A stretch of DNA of 64,000 bases from Saccharolobus islandicus REY15A (GCF_000189555.1 NC_017276.1); one strand, 5' to 3'; positions 11,967-25,748 are shown, counted from the stretch's first letter. The notes: generated from the sequence alone by a model not told the origin. Program-made: numbers and translations.

Positions 11967-12410
11967 ATGGATTCTCAAAACTATGACATTGAAAAAATTT
12001 TACAGAGATATGATAGCGATTATGTATTTCATTATTTAGGTGTGAAAATTTTAGAGATAAAGGAGGGATATGCTAAAACACAAATACCGTTCAAGAAGGA
12101 GCTGACAAGAAGGGGAAATATTCTAAATGGTGGAATGATAGTTGCGTCCATAGACTACACAGGTGGATTGGCAGTTCTATCAATAAACGATGGAATGGAT
12201 CAAGTAACACAAGAACTAAAGGTAAATTTCCTAGAGCCAATGTATAGGGGGCCGTTTACTGTTGAAGCAAATGTAATAAGAAAAGGTAGAACTGCAGTTG
12301 CAGTGGAGATTACTTTTAAAGACGTTGAGGGAAGTCTTGGGGCGATTGGATTGGGAACGTGGTACATAATAAGGGATAAGAAAATTAACATGAATGTTCA
12401 ACCTCAATAA
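11967..12410 (+). CDS. PaaI family hot-dog thioesterase
   Basis: [14 protein letters not shown] motif, [11 protein letters not shown]. Confidence 0.85.
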
Positions 12411-16244: not shown

Positions 16245-17588
16245 ATGGAGCCAGAAAAGTTCACGTGGGATTCAGGTAAGGCAATAATATCCCAATTTAT
16301 AGGATTCCTTCTAGATTCCTATGATTTGACAATGATTTTAAGCATAGCTCCAGTGTTAGCTAAGGTAATTCTACCACCTGCAAGCCCACTAATTGCGACA
16401 TTTAATATCATTCTTTCCTACTCCCTAACAATAATATTCAGACCCTTAGGTTCAGCAATATTTGGAAATTTAGGAGATAAGATAGGTAGGAGAGCTGACT
16501 TAATAATTACGGTTTTGGGTTTAGGAATTACTAGTGCACTTACTTCGGCATTGCCAACTTATGCCCAAGCTGGAATTCTCTCATTCGCTCTATTCGCTTT
16601 AATAAGAGTTGCGGTAGGCATTTTTGCTGGTGGAGAATACTCAGCTGGTCATCCATTTGCTATGGAATGGACACCATATAAATGGAGAGGGTTTGTTAGT
16701 GGATTAGTTCAAGGTGGTTTCTCATTTGGTGCAGCCTTGGCTGCTGTGGTAGAGGGCATCTTCATAGGAATTTATGGTGTATCTGGTGTTGTGGAGTTTG
16801 CGTGGAGATATGTGTTTTTAACTGCTGTAATACCAGCTTTCATAGCCTTAGCAGTAAGACTCGCTATGAAAGAAACACCAGTTTTTGAAGATGTCAAAAA
16901 GAAGAACCTAGTCAGAAGGACACCATTAGTAGATTTGTTTAAACCACCTTATAGAAGAGATTTCTTTCAAGTCATGGCATATATGACGGGGATGTTCTTC
17001 TTCGCTTATTCTCTATTTGCATTTGTACCTACTATTTTAGAACATAGTCCATCAATATTTAGCCTTGGAGAGGCAAACTACATATATAGCATCGGTACTT
17101 ACGCTGCATTCGCTGGTGCAGTAATGTTCGGTACCTTATCCCAGTATGTTGGAAGAAGAAGGTTAACAATAATATGGAGTATAATCACCTTTATCATTGC
17201 AATACCAATTTATTATGGGCTTATTACTGCAGCAATTGCGGGTAACGCTATAACTGCTATGTTATTTTCAATTATCATCGGTATAATAACACAAGGACCT
17301 TGGGGAATAATACCCATCTACTTATCTGAAAGATTTAAAGCATCAATGAGGGCTTCTGGAGTGGGTTTCGGCTATTCCTCTGGAATTTTCATAGGTGGTT
17401 GGTTCAGTATATATGTGCCTCTAATGCATAACTACTTGTTTAAGTCATTAGATACACCGAATAACATATGGTTCTCTACGGCAGTATTATTGATGATTGG
17501 AGCTTTAATAGTTGGTATTGCACAATACTTCGGACCAGAAACACTAGGAACTAAATTGGCTGAAGAACCACAAAAAACCATAGAATAA
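16245..17588 (+). CDS. MFS transporter, metabolite:H+ symporter-like
   Basis: [34 protein letters not shown]..., [12 protein letters not shown]. Confidence 0.88.
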
Positions 17589-18680
17589 AATGGAAAAGTA
17601 CAGCTTTTTAAAAAGGATTTTAATTTTTTCAAAAACTTTTATTTTATCTTTTTTTACATACACTAATACCTCCTCACCAGAATGTATTGGATGATCAGAA
17701 TACGTGAATATTTCATCATCCGAATTTAACGGAGTTATAGTTATCCTAAATAAACCTCCCTGATAACCTATAACTTTGACCCTCCCCTTTCCCACTAAAG
17801 TCCAAGCGTCATCCCTAATGACATCTTTCGATAACTTCACATCTTCTGGTCTAATACCAATTAGCACTTTATCATTAGAGATACTAACTGGAAATCTGAA
17901 ACTGCCTATAACTACTCCCTCATTAGTCACCTTTCCCTCCAGTTCATTAATTTCACCTATGAGACTAGCAACTTGAATTGATACTGGATTATCATATACC
18001 TCTTCAGGCTTACCCACTTGAACCAATTTGCCTTTAACCAATACCCCTACCCTATCAGCAATGGCGAAAATATCAGCGGGATCATGACTGACGATAAGTA
18101 AGGTTACTCCTAATCTACTTTGGACTTCTTTAACTAAAGCTCTAGCACTATCTCTCATCCTGGCATCTAAATTGCTAAATGGTTCATCAAGCAAAAGCAA
18201 AGATGGATCTTTAACTAAAGCTCTAGCTAATGCAACTCTTTGTTGTTGTCCTCCAGACAATTCCCTAGGAAGGTGATTTAAAACGTGATGAATATCCAAA
18301 ATCTTGGCTACTTCCTCAACCCTTTTCCTTATCTCCTCCTTACTCATCTTCATATTAGTTAAAGGAAACGCAATATTCTCAAACGCCGTTAAATTAGGAT
18401 ATAGAGCCCAAGTTTGAAATACCATCCCGATTTTCCTGTCTTCTGGAGGTACTAGTAGTTTGCCATTTGAAGCAACTAATTTGTCATCGAAGTACAGTTC
18501 CCCGGTAGAAGGTACATCTAAGCCTGCAATTATTCTCATGAAGGTTGTCTTACCAGCTCCGCTCGGTCCCAATATTCCAAATCTCTCTCCATTTTCAATT
18601 GTTATATTAACGTTATCCAATGCTATTACTTTGCCTTTCTTAAAAACTTTAGAGATGTTTTTTACAATAATCTTAACCAT
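17544..18680 (-). CDS. glcV: Glucose ABC transporter ATPase GlcV (stop lost; 25-aa C-terminal extension)
   Basis: [28 protein letters not shown]-terminus. As recalled, it matches the 353-aa S. solfataricus GlcV up to KVFEK, then reads through. Confidence 0.92.
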
Positions 18681-18683
18681 CTT

Positions 18684-19547
18684 TTACACCCCTTTACCTC
18701 CTCCACCTAATGCCATTAGTCCTCTTATAAAGTATCTTCCAAGAAAAACAAATATTGCAAGTGGTATTATACTTGCAAGCATTCCAGCCGCGAATGTATC
18801 ATTATATAAAGTACCATAAGCACCACTATATGATAATACAGCTATTGACGTTAGTTTCATTCCTGGAGTTGTTACTAACACTAACGGGATAAAGAAGTTA
18901 TTCCATGTCTGTATTATAATAAATATTAACGTTGAAATGAAGCCCGGCATAGAAAGTGGAAACACTATCTTCAAGAATATCTTTAAATCTCCAGTCCCAT
19001 CCATCTTTGCCGCCTCAATTAAACTCCTCGGAATCACTGTGATAAACATTGACATTAATAAAGCTCCAGTAGGTATATAAAATATCAATAACGCAAATAT
19101 TATACCTATGTAAGTATCTAAAAATCCCATGCTTACCATTAGCCTAGTCAACGGTAATAGTGTAGCTTCTTGGGGAATAAATGTAGCTAGTGATATTAGA
19201 GAGAATAAAACGTCACTTATGGCTGAAGAAGCTCTACTAAACGAGTAAGATAATGTATAGAAGAAATATGCACCCATGGCACCTAAGAATGCTGAAATGA
19301 ACGAAGTAGGAATAACAATTATTAGACTATTGATTAGAGGTTTAGCTAGTGATAAAAGGACTGAGGCGTAAGCTTCGAACGTAATTTTGGTAGGTGGTAC
19401 TAAAACTGGAGTAGATAGAACTTCAAAATTACTCTTAAACCCATTTATGAGCATTGCATAAACTGGTATAAGCCATATAACACTGATAATTGCTAATGCT
19501 AGATAATGTAAACTTGCCTTTATTACTGGCCTCATCTTCTTATCCAC
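18684..19547 (-). CDS. glcU: Glucose ABC transporter permease GlcU (probable start ATG 19535, overlapping the glcT stop)
   Basis: EAAKMDG EAA loop, WNNFF.PL; directly upstream of glcV. Confidence 0.88.
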   Translation of the reverse strand: MDKKMRPVIKASLHYLALAIISVIWLIPVYAMLINGFKSNFEVLSTPVLVPPTKITFEAYASVLLSLAKPLINSLIIVIPTSFISAFLGAMGAYFFYTLSYSFSRASSAISDVLFSLISLATFIPQEATLLPLTRLMVSMGFLDTYIGIIFALLIFYIPTGALLMSMFITVIPRSLIEAAKMDGTGDLKIFLKIVFPLSMPGFISTLIFIIIQTWNNFFIPLVLVTTPGMKLTSIAVLSYSGAYGTLYNDTFAAGMLASIIPLAIFVFLGRYFIRGLMALGGGGKGV

Positions 19548-19663
19548 CTCCTAATTACAGTCAAGGCATACGGAATAATAATTATCGTAGCAACTAATGT
19601 TATTATCGTAGCAACCGCTGTAGCTTGAGAGAAATACTCCACGGTGAAAAGGTAATACATATA
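19532..19663 (-). pseudogene. glcT: 3'-terminal fragment of the glucose ABC permease GlcT
   Basis: Translates YMYYLFTVEYFSQATAVATIITLVATIIIIPYALTVIRRWIRR*, a typical last helix of a sugar permease, ending in ATGA overlap with glcU. Upstream sequence belongs to a different gene. Confidence 0.8.
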
Positions 19664-20484
19664 ATTTCGCTCACGGTATCTTTCTGTTATTTGGCTCTTA
19701 TATTACCTTTACCATAGCTGAGGTCTTAAAACAGACTCCATATTTCTCATTACCTATTGCATTCTTATTAGGTGGGGCAATAGCGTTAATCCAATACTAT
19801 GGAGTATTGTTACCCCTAAGTATGAGAGGAGGTGGTTTAGTGTCACAAATGGTTGCTACTCTAGCCTTTTCCATATTACTATATGGAGGGCTAAACGCAT
19901 ATGCAAGCTATCTTGGCTATGTATACAATGTGCAATCTAGGGATGTAACCTTGGGATTCTTAGACTATGAATTAGGGGGAGGAATTAGAGCTGTTTTCCT
20001 AGTTTCCATCATTTTAGCGATAGCGTTTATACTCTCGCTTTACCTCTTTTTGAATAAGACTAGACTAGGCATATCCATTAGGGCTACAGTTGAAAACTCG
20101 TCATTGGCTGAAAGCATGGGTATAAATACGAAACTAGTTAAGGCAATTTCTTGGTTTTTGGCTGGAGGTATAGCAAGTGCTGCCGGCTCCTTATATCCTT
20201 TACAATTCGTATTTTCACCCACACTTGCATATTCAATATTACTAAGCATATTCGCAGCAAGTGTACTAGGAGGTTTAATGAGCCTATTTGGCGGGTTTAT
20301 AGGCGGGTTTATAGAGGGATTCATTGAGAAATACATAATGGCTGAATTATCGATCTATTTATCCCCAGTAATAGGAGTGAGTCCTTTCGTTATCAACCAA
20401 TACTCAACGTTAGTACCACTCATAGTAGTTGCAGCAGTTCTCTTAATAGCGCCAAATGGGATTATGGGAATAAGGGTGAAATGA
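19657..20484 (+). pseudogene. livH: 5'-truncated branched-chain amino acid ABC permease (LivH-like)
   Basis: The frame extends upstream of the ATG at 19807 to TYNFAHGIFLLFGSY (the LivH NFAHG motif normally about 30-40 aa in). No start codon; an in-frame TGA lies in glcT-derived DNA just upstream. Confidence 0.8.
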
Positions 20485-21530
20485 TGGCAGTAGATATTTC
20501 CTCTCTTATTTTAGCCATAGTCTTAGACTTCTCAGTATATTTGATGGTTGTAATATCATTAAATGTAGAAATAGGATTAACTGGAGTTCCAAATTTTGGT
20601 AGAGTCCTAGCGTATGCTGGAGGAGCATTCATAGCTGGAGCAATACCGGGAAGGATTTTACAGCTAATATATGGACTTCACAGTGATTATATTCTTAATA
20701 ATCCCTCTGTAATAGCAGAGATAAACGATAAATTGCTTCAACAACCGTTAATGGCTCTTGCAATTTTAATTCTTACCCTAATTCTAGCAGGGATAGTTGG
20801 GGCGGCCTTAGGTTATATTTCATCTTATCCTGCTTTGAGATTAAGAGAGGATTACTTGGGAATACTATTATTGGTAGCTGGGACTTCACTGGTAGTAATA
20901 GGGATTACTTACCCACCAATAGTGGGAGGCACAGTAGGTGTTCAAGTTCCCGCTGTATTTAACGCACTTCTAGGTCAAGGATCTAGCTTATATTATAAGA
21001 TATCGATAGTGTTGTTAGCATTTTCATTAGTGATGCTTCTTCTATTCAACCTAACATCGAACTCCCCAATGGGAAGAGTGTTCAGAGCAGTCAGAGAAAA
21101 TGAGGATCTAGTAGAAGTTCTAGGTAGAGATATAGGTGTAATCAGAGGTAAGGCAATGGCATTAGGAGGATTTCTAGCGGGCATAGCAGGATCGCTTTAC
21201 GCTTTTTATATAGGTTCAGTATTTGCAGGTGCATTCGATAATTTAACGTGGTCATTTAACCCATATTTAATGTTAGTATTGGGAGGTGCAGGGACTTCAA
21301 TAGGCGCAATGCTAGGAGCACTAATATATTCCACCTTATATCACGTTATCGATTTGTACAAACAAACAATAGGGTATTATCTGCATTTTGATGCAGTATG
21401 GCTACAATATATGTTATTTGGACTTATACTAACAATAATCCTTATAATACGACCTCAAGGTATTGTCGTAGAAAAAGCTAAGCCATTAGTAAAACCGAAA
21501 GCTAAGGATGAGGAAAAACTAACTAGTTAA
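20481..21530 (+). CDS. livM: Branched-chain amino acid ABC permease (LivM-like)
   Basis: G.TGVPNFG, LRLREDYLGI, SPMGRVFRAVRENE, MLVLGGAGT..GAMLGA. Confidence 0.88.
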   Translation: MMAVDISSLILAIVLDFSVYLMVVISLNVEIGLTGVPNFGRVLAYAGGAFIAGAIPGRILQLIYGLHSDYILNNPSVIAEINDKLLQQPLMALAILILTLILAGIVGAALGYISSYPALRLREDYLGILLLVAGTSLVVIGITYPPIVGGTVGVQVPAVFNALLGQGSSLYYKISIVLLAFSLVMLLLFNLTSNSPMGRVFRAVRENEDLVEVLGRDIGVIRGKAMALGGFLAGIAGSLYAFYIGSVFAGAFDNLTWSFNPYLMLVLGGAGTSIGAMLGALIYSTLYHVIDLYKQTIGYYLHFDAVWLQYMLFGLILTIILIIRPQGIVVEKAKPLVKPKAKDEEKLTS

Positions 21531-24262: not shown

Positions 24263-24370
24263 GTGATAAGAGTTTCCTAGTTGAAGAAAAATAGTTTACT
24301 AAATAAGTATCGTGAAGTAACTATAGACTTTTGTTCTTGATAACTTAGATAGTGAACAACCCCGCCTTAC

Positions 24371-25586
24371 CGGTAGACCCAAAATCATATTAGAAAAAAT
24401 ATTTCTGGTAGGATAATATCGAATTTATAAAAGATAAAGAAATTTATAAGAGTATAAAGAATTCAATTGAAGAAAGGGTTTAAGGTGAGGGAGATGGCGT
24501 ATTACCACGTGAATAACCAAGATGGTAACACCAGGTCTCCCTCACCAAAATTCAACAAATAGGATATAAATTACTTTCCATGTTGAACTTCCAAGGGGAA
24601 AAGGTAGAGGAGGTAGCGAAAACTCTCATCTCCGCGTGTTTGTGGAACGATTCAGTAGAGAACAAGTCCAGAGCGTATGACGTATCCCCACAGACCGTGA
24701 GGAATTACGTAGAGAAACAAGGGATGGAAGTGACTGAAAAGCTATTGGAAAGAGCTAGGAAAATATCCTTGGAGATATTAAAGGGAGTGAATGAGATAGA
24801 TCTCTCAATAGACTGGACAACCAAGACGTGGTATGGGAAACCAGTGAAAGGGCTCGGGAGCTCTGAAAAAGGAAACTCGTGGAACTACGCAACTGCAACA
24901 ACCAAGTATAAGGGGAAAGTGCTTTTACTTGCCTTTATTCCGCAAGTGAACGGTATGACTAAGGACGAGATAGTGAAGGCTCTTGTTGAACAAGTAATGG
25001 CAATGGGATTCAAGATAAGGTTGATAACTCTTGACGCTGGTTTCTATACTGTTGACGTGCTCAACTTCATTTCACAGTTTAAGTACATAATTGCTGTTCC
25101 GGTTGGGGACGTGAAGGTGTACGAGGAGTTTGACGGGGATTACACAACTAATAGTAAGAGGCATAGGAGGGATGAGCAGGTCAAGTTCAGGCTTCTCGTG
25201 TACAGCAAGGAAAAAGTGGGGAGAAAGAAGAAGAGTCTTGTTTACTTCGCTAGGGCTACTAACCTAGACCTATCCAAGAGGGAAGTGTTGGATTTGTACA
25301 ATAAGGTAAGAGGTCCCATAGAGACCTCTTATAGGAACATTAAGGCTTTTCTTCCATTTACTAGTTCTACTAAGTTTGTTTTCCGCACGTTGATCTTCGT
25401 GCTGGCCCTTGTACTCTACTCCTTATATACCATATTCAAGGGGGAGGTGGGGAGAGAGGAGTTTAGATTATTATTAATTCTTTTATTTCCTGATTTATTC
25501 AATCCAGAGAATTTTACATTTAATGTAATTGAAACGCTTATTTATACTATAGATTTATTTTTAAGGAGGTGATTTTGGGTCTACCG
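24371..25586 (+). mobile_element. ISH3-family insertion sequence (ISC1200/ISC1225-like), 1216 bp
   Basis: Perfect 17-bp terminal inverted repeats cggtagacccaaaatca (24371-24387) and tgattttgggtctaccg (25570-25586); flanks ttac/tcac (4-bp duplication with one mismatch); higher GC than surrounding DNA. Confidence 0.93.
24580..25572 (+). CDS. ISH3-family DDE transposase (N-terminal codons from ATG 24522 are out of frame)
   Basis: SIDWT, TLDAGF, IETSYR catalytic motifs; the stop codon lies inside the right TIR. Confidence 0.9.
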   Translation: MLNFQGEKVEEVAKTLISACLWNDSVENKSRAYDVSPQTVRNYVEKQGMEVTEKLLERARKISLEILKGVNEIDLSIDWTTKTWYGKPVKGLGSSEKGNSWNYATATTKYKGKVLLLAFIPQVNGMTKDEIVKALVEQVMAMGFKIRLITLDAGFYTVDVLNFISQFKYIIAVPVGDVKVYEEFDGDYTTNSKRHRRDEQVKFRLLVYSKEKVGRKKKSLVYFARATNLDLSKREVLDLYNKVRGPIETSYRNIKAFLPFTSSTKFVFRTLIFVLALVLYSLYTIFKGEVGREEFRLLLILLFPDLFNPENFTFNVIETLIYTIDLFLRR

Positions 25587-25748
25587 TCACGGAAGGGGAC
25601 TTTCGCCCCCTTAATCCCTAATTAAGTTAAACCTACAAGTTGACCTAATTTGTACAGTCTTATTAGTGATTCTGTTTCCTTTTCCCTTCCGAATGGATTA
25701 TTTGTTGGTTTTCCGTAAACAAACCACAATCTACTGGTACCACTAATT

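Follow-up and report, generated by a model that had tools for sequence, protein, structure and literature searches.

The chromosome of Saccharolobus islandicus REY15A carries the remnants of two ABC transporter operons, glc and liv, joined end to end, very probably by one deletion of 5,834 bp that reached, in the REY15A lineage, from the 3' part of glcT to the 5' end of livH. Relatives with an intact locus preserve the ancestral arrangement, from which the structure of the event, its two breakpoints and their overlap of 2 bp can be read. The same junction is present in independently made assemblies, and other lineages have lost parts of this locus on their own. The event is an ordinary gene loss, IS-free and nearly blunt, in a published genome; no description of it was found in the literature searched, and an earlier mention may still exist.

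In the genetics of Crenarchaeota, REY15A is one of the main model strains, as is its derivative E233S. Judged by its sequence, REY15A would lack both a transporter of the Liv type and the ABC transporter that has been characterised in S. solfataricus as taking up glucose with high affinity. This matters when carbon sources are chosen for REY15A and when glucose serves as a "non-inducing" sugar, and also in comparisons of REY15A with HVE10/4, LAL14/1 and S. solfataricus. The locus also offers a clean, base-pair-resolved case of stepwise operon decay in archaea. The repeated loss, together with the stepwise decay of glcV, is mildly interesting in an otherwise ordinary case.

The stretch of DNA analyzed herein, referred to as the window, is 64,000 nucleotides long. 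Its part 15749-36666 aligns without gaps and with 100% identity to 2185749-2206666 of CP002425.1, the REY15A chromosome of 2,522,992 bp. The coordinates differ throughout by 2,170,000, and by extrapolation from the compared part the whole window corresponds to CP002425.1 2,170,001-2,234,000.

Ancestral arrangement and the junction

Intact loci were obtained by a look-up of the LivM protein of the window in public assemblies. They exhibit the order MFS gene (+), glcV (-), glcU (-), glcT (-), glcS (+, 554 aa), the gene of a Peripla_BP_6 binding protein (+, 468 aa), livG, livF, livH (306 aa), livM and PaREP1 (-). This order is found in loci L001, L005, L006, L023 (strain Y.G.57.14), L025 and L037-L046; strains and assemblies with it include M.14.25, LAL14/1, CP046616.1, the Mutnovsky strain AHJL01 and GCA_053498275.1. 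Consecutive accession numbers give the same order for HVE10/4, LAL14/1, Y.G.57.14, M.14.25 and S. shibatae. The glc and liv clusters of intact relatives are immediate neighbours that diverge from the glcT–glcS intergenic region.

The flanks of the junction in the window are collinear with the intact loci at 99.0-99.8% identity. The left flank up to 19663 and the right flank from 19662 are each 99.8% identical to L005, with 11 substitutions in 6.5 kb, and exactly 5,834 bp (L005 3350-9183) are missing between them. Since the broken genes are neighbours in the intact relatives, a deletion suffices to explain the junction, and neither an inversion nor an IS is needed. The direction of the change is a loss and not a gain because the coding remnants are truncated. 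Strains with an intact locus have the very same LivM protein; this, and flanks so near to L005, mark the deletion as recent. A scan of genome contigs with intact GlcT returned only relatives with 60-77% identity (from a Sulfolobaceae MAG, Vulcanisaeta and Thermocladium) and none from Saccharolobus.

The deleted DNA comprises 242-243 of the 285-286 glcT codons (85% of glcT), the divergent glcT–glcS intergenic region of 191 bp, the whole of glcS, the gene of the Peripla_BP_6 binding protein, livG and livF (encoding both liv ATPases), and the first 33 codons of livH, which include the first transmembrane segment of LivH. The divergent promoters probably lay in the deleted intergenic region. The preliminary description had correctly listed glcS, the liv binding protein, livG and livF as missing from the window, and its picture of two headless remnants that point apart with no IS between them is accurate. 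It had also taken the junction for a rearrangement that fused separate loci, by inversion or large deletion. Of these two, the deletion is borne out and the inversion is unsupported, as all intact relatives have the flanks in collinear order with 5.8 kb between them. The notion of separate loci does not hold either: with the operons adjoining in intact relatives, there is no reason to expect a reciprocal junction.

At 19662/19663, glcT on the minus strand, reduced to its last 43 codons, meets livH on the plus strand. The 132-nt piece of glcT encodes YMYYLFTVEYFSQATAVATIITLVATIIIIPYALTVIRRWIRR followed by the stop codon, which is identical to the C terminus of intact GlcT in relatives (YMYYLF...RRWIRR and stop); the earlier count of 43 codons is thus exact. 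On the 5' side of this piece, the minus-strand frame contains many stops, and in REY15A the remnant is annotated as an ORF of 42 aa. On the plus strand, the frame that follows the stop codon at 19645-19647 reads KGNTYNFAHGIFLLFG... and continues into the ORF ending at 20484. The livH remnant has an in-frame stop 4 codons upstream, matches Pfam BPD_transp_2 from profile position 29 of 269, and has been called by annotators as an ORF of 220, 256 or 268 aa. Its start is indeed missing, as had been described, but the cut lies near the 5' end (33 of 306 codons gone) and not in the middle of the gene. Intact LivH reads MIDPLIINTIVYGSILGLSSLSLTLTYLTTKIPNFAHG (...TTKIPNFAHG), hence the LivH-derived sequence in the window begins at N34. 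The start TYNFAHG that had been given for it is composite, meaning that the codons for T and Y are DNA from the glcT side read in another frame.

The left parent reads ...GGTAATACATATA before and TAACTCGC... after the breakpoint, the right parent ...CTAAGATACC before and TAATTTCGCTCACGG... after it, and the window ...GGTAATACATATAATTTCGCTCACGG... across it. In the alignment with three intact relatives, the match of the left parent to the window extends as far as 19663 and that of the right parent begins at 19662, which leaves an overlap of 2 bp, TA. The microhomology of 7 bp (acatata) that had been proposed is not seen in these parental flanks; it had been read from the overlapping reading frames instead of from the parental sequences. 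Among 200,000 simulated deletions of 3-9 kb drawn in the same DNA, an overlap of at least 2 bp occurred with a probability of 0.18 and one of at least 7 bp with 0.0007. The observed overlap is therefore not longer than chance would give, and it lends no support to a microhomology-driven mechanism. An imperfect similarity between the breakpoints (TAACT-CGCT versus TAATTTCGCT) was considered as a slippage substrate and rejected, being 2 bp out of register with the junction. Most economically, the ends were joined illegitimately over the 2 bp, probably by end joining or by a replication template switch, and the joining would have been driven neither by homology nor by an IS.

No IS copy, IS end or IS footprint was found at the junction, where the two parental flanks account for the full sequence. 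An indirect part for ISs can be conceived in which two TA-targeting copies (IS630/Tc1-type) inserted into glcT and livH and then recombined, after which precise excision of the remaining copy left one TA. The dinucleotide shared at the junction is the target that IS630-family elements duplicate, Saccharolobus genomes are rich in ISs, and ISs are present both at a synteny break downstream (~24360-25597) and beside the deletion of strain Y.N.15.51. This course of events is nevertheless highly improbable. It takes four events where one suffices, it has left no remnant or footprint, and TA is expected by chance at this DNA composition; the ISs of Y.N.15.51 lie 217 bp off the junction and are separate from the deletion.

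Still smaller is the probability of an inversion or translocation that fused distant loci and placed a reciprocal junction of the glcT and livH 5' parts elsewhere. In every intact relative, the broken genes are 5.8 kb apart on one stretch of DNA and oriented to each other as they are here, a plain deletion yields exactly the observed product, and the relatives' GlcS is on no REY15A contig among its 22 carriers; these points outweigh the IS-bounded synteny break only 4.7 kb away (24352-25626), which indicates that rearrangements do occur in the region.

An assembly chimera, for which no supporting evidence was found, has practically no probability left: the finished chromosome CP002425.1, the separate draft GCA_016415645.1 (L004) and the Logan assembly of SRR5578742 (L008) agree in the identical junction, all with 100% identity, which rules out an assembly error, and the junction recurs in many Logan run assemblies and in 14 further similar places, with its specific products, the 378-aa GlcV and the 220-aa livH remnant, on 215 and 109 contigs, respectively. 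Hence, the single deletion of 5,834 bp is retained as the explanation of the junction. Its coordinates, those of the surrounding genes and those of the deletions in other lineages are compiled in Table 1.

Table 1. Features of the window around the glcT/livH junction, and deletions of the locus placed on the Y.G.57.14 reference (L023)
Feature	Position	Strand	Description
MFS/Sugar_tr-family transporter	16245..17588	+	447 aa; Pfam MFS_1 and Sugar_tr
glcV, ATPase	17544..18680	-	378 aa (353 aa where the locus is intact); Pfam ABC_tran and GlcV_C_terminal
T6 homopolymer in glcV 3' end	17624..17629		T7 in intact relatives; alignment with L001/L005/L006
glcU permease	18684..19547	-	Pfam BPD_transp_1; 852 nt aligned to the reference without indels
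glcT remnant	19532..19663	-	last 43 codons and stop of a 285-286-aa permease; from translations and the collinear left flank
Deletion junction	19662..19663		TA common to both parental flanks; CP002425.1 2,189,662-2,189,663
livH remnant	19664..20484	+	HAAT-family permease of 306 aa, kept from residue 34 to residue 306; start codon and residues 1-33 gone
livM permease	20481..21530	+	intact; Pfam BPD_transp_2; exact protein in the intact loci L001, L005, L006
Deletion, REY15A	L023 4267-10100		5,834 bp; junction overlap 2 bp, TA; glcV frameshift at last codon
Deletion, Mutnovsky M.16 (AHJP01, AHJQ01, AHJT01 and others)	L023 4362-12475		8,114 bp; no overlap, one extra G
Deletion, Y.N.15.51	L023 4612 to ~12116-12120		junction overlap 0-3 bp
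Deletion, L.S.2.15 and L.D.8.5 (Lassen)	L023 1264-6678		17-bp direct repeat (16/17) CTGGTCATCC[A/T]TTTGCT in MFS gene and glcS
Deletion, S. shibatae CP077713.1	L023 3203-11699

Remaining genes and status of the two transporters

The MFS gene is the conserved left neighbour of glcV in all relatives. In GlcV, residues 1-352 are native and match the S. solfataricus GlcV (PDB 1OXS, E = 2.5e-218), and the GlcV-type C-terminal domain is present (PF17847, E = 1.2e-29). A deletion of 1 nt at nt 1052 of the gene puts the last codon out of frame and lengthens the protein by 25 aa. The C terminus ...VFEKN is thereby replaced by another one, and the lengthened gene shares 45 bp with the 3' end of the MFS gene, which is convergent to it. 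The shortened homopolymer is common to all REY15A-lineage assemblies seen. The frameshift probably arose after the deletion, as would be expected under relaxed selection. For GlcU, an exact look-up of the 287-aa protein with a GTG start gave no match, because annotators begin the gene at the ATG at 19535, which gives the 283 aa annotated in relatives.

A glucose transporter of the GlcSTUV type contains two BPD_transp_1 permeases, GlcT and GlcU. Only GlcU is intact in the window, as GlcT retains 43 of 285-286 codons. GlcS is missing from the window, its gene lying wholly within the deleted DNA, and none of the 22 contigs that carry the GlcS of the closest relatives is from REY15A (0/22). An intact glcSTUV elsewhere in the genome, which would have overturned the earlier reading, is unsupported by this contig search, and a diverged or transposed second copy of the lost genes is unlikely. 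A transporter of the HAAT family contains two BPD_transp_2 permeases, a Peripla_BP_6 protein and two ATPases; of these, the window encodes a complete LivM and a LivH without residues 1-33. Both transporters have indeed lost essential parts, the glucose transporter GlcS, most of GlcT and the presumed divergent promoter region, and the Liv-type transporter its binding protein, its two ATPases and the 5' end of livH. The genes glcU, glcV, truncated livH and livM are orphans without binding proteins and, probably, without promoters. Both transporters are predicted to be non-functional in REY15A, and the orphan genes are likely untranscribed. REY15A is routinely grown in a medium of glucose plus tryptone (10.1101/2025.03.28.645846), and such growth neither proves nor disproves the uptake of glucose by another route.

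Further structural variation is found downstream. The IS nearest to the junction is 1.24 kb long and sits exactly at the synteny break mentioned above. It contains a transposase gene (24580-25572, +) with the domains DUF4322 and DDE_Tnp_1, has imperfect terminal inverted repeats and exhibits no target-site duplication. On its left are genes of a creatininase-family protein, a metallopeptidase and PaREP1, which are found in all strains. On its right, the genes from arginase (-) and UDG (-) onward are located 115-160 kb away and in opposite orientation in Mutnovsky strains; hence, REY15A carries an IS-bounded inversion (or deletion) at this place, 4.7 kb from the glcT/livH junction. A 444-aa aminotransferase gene, which follows downstream of arginase in other strains, is missing at ~17252-17587 of L032, a Logan assembly of a close relative, and is present in L029 at 17092-18426.

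Independent losses in other lineages

Further deletions were traced by way of shortened GlcV proteins belonging to the same cluster and of the contexts of LivH, and their breakpoints were placed on the Y.G.57.14 reference. At least four additional independent deletions were found, all with different breakpoints, so that at least five are counted in total with that of REY15A (Table 1). The core common to all five, L023 4612-6678, consists of the 5' part of glcT, the intergenic region and most of glcS. Collateral loss differs between the events and concerns the liv genes in most of them and the MFS gene in the Lassen strains. GlcV has 353 aa in every intact locus seen. All three lineages that keep glcU and glcV have an intact glcU and an indel lesion in glcV: the frameshift at the last codon in REY15A, internal deletions that leave 167 aa in the Mutnovsky M.16 strains, and a frameshift at nt 370 in Y.N.15.51. 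The two ISs of Y.N.15.51 are inserted with their own 9-bp duplication. In this way, the locus provides a small set of natural deletion junctions, three with an overlap of 0-3 bp and one with a 17-bp repeat, from an organism that is not known to possess canonical Ku-dependent end joining.

The two Lassen strains have the same repeats and the same 5.4-kb deletion, and the mismatched base differs (A versus T; L021 6680-6696 in L.S.2.15 and L024 6679-6695 in L.D.8.5). This difference stems from two independent events at the same repeat, from a different resolution of a heteroduplex or from a later point change. The surviving liv cluster of L.S.2.15 (L021 7214-9277) looks eroded, with a binding protein of 433 instead of 468 aa and livG split into 196 and 59 aa.

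In the metagenome contigs L022, L027 and L028, homology ends between glcS and the liv binding-protein gene, upstream of the match to L023 7021. L022 has an IS1-family transposase, a cytochrome bd oxidase and a HEPN/NTP-transferase pair in place of glcSTUV. These contigs add one more structural form of the locus, associated with an IS. Locus L036 (CP160827.2, labelled S. solfataricus) was left out of the count of losses. Almost every glc and liv gene is fragmented there, the alignment to the reference has 15 gaps and 96.7% identity, and the split genes are probable indel errors of the assembly.

The recurrence is ascribed mainly to a relaxation of selection, the locus being dispensable. Segments are commonly gained and lost in S. 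islandicus, with 48 non-core segments of more than 5 kb among 12 Mutnovsky strains (PMC3283564), and repeated loss is therefore expected under relaxed selection alone. That the REY15A deletion and its independent counterparts were positively selected, as opposed to being neutral decay, is unlikely. The common core of the five deletions would fit such selection, as would the polymorphism within one hot-spring population, in which AHJL01 is intact and AHJP01, AHJQ01 and AHJT01 are deleted. As reasons, GlcS could be costly as an abundant surface-exposed glycoprotein, or it could be exploited by a virus. Against these points stand, besides the frequency of segmental loss, the unlike collateral losses. 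That three of the left breakpoints fall into 345 bp of glcT does not help either, since a rough estimate puts the probability of this clustering at ~0.09, which is not significant; a breakpoint hotspot in glcT is not claimed.

A more specific form, in which the 5' part of glcT and glcS are a recurrent target of selected loss and the shedding of an abundant surface glucose-binding protein with a pilin-like anchor is advantageous, is a little more doubtful again. If it were true, the advantage would consist in evading a GlcS-exploiting virus or toxin or in the saved cost of expression, and this trade-off would maintain the deletion polymorphism within the spring. Neutral decay under relaxed selection is the reading preferred for the five deletions.

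Comparison with known systems

The glcSTUV glucose ABC transporter of S. solfataricus P2 (SSO2847-2850, with the GlcV structures 1OXS-1OXX) is the closest known counterpart of the glc cluster. The glcV, glcU and glcT remnant of the window are orthologous to it, and intact S. islandicus relatives have the full four genes, with the 554-aa GlcS falling into the 90% cluster of the P2 GlcS. Unlike the S. solfataricus system, the window lacks glcS and 85% of glcT, and the end of glcV is frameshifted; hence, only a remnant is left. The liv cluster resembles the HAAT family (LivKHMGF-type, TC 3.A.1.4) in that the window encodes two BPD_transp_2 permeases, to which the relatives add a Peripla_BP_6 binding protein and two ATPases, one of them with a BCA_ABC_TP_C tail. 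It differs from a complete HAAT system, as merely livM and the 5'-truncated livH are kept.

As an event, the deletion is similar to the segmental deletions of Sulfolobaceae (PMC3283564), being a loss of accessory transport genes of several kilobases that is polymorphic among close relatives. As opposed to those, the REY15A breakpoints are resolved to the base pair inside two genes and involve no mobile element, and at least four other deletions have struck the locus independently. The short-homology deletion of the Lassen strains L.S.2.15 and L.D.8.5 is the nearest parallel in outcome, since it too removed glcS and glcT without an IS. The difference is in the junction: the Lassen strains have 17-bp (16/17) direct repeats, and the overlap is 2 bp in REY15A, none with one extra G in M.16, and 0-3 bp in Y.N.15.51.
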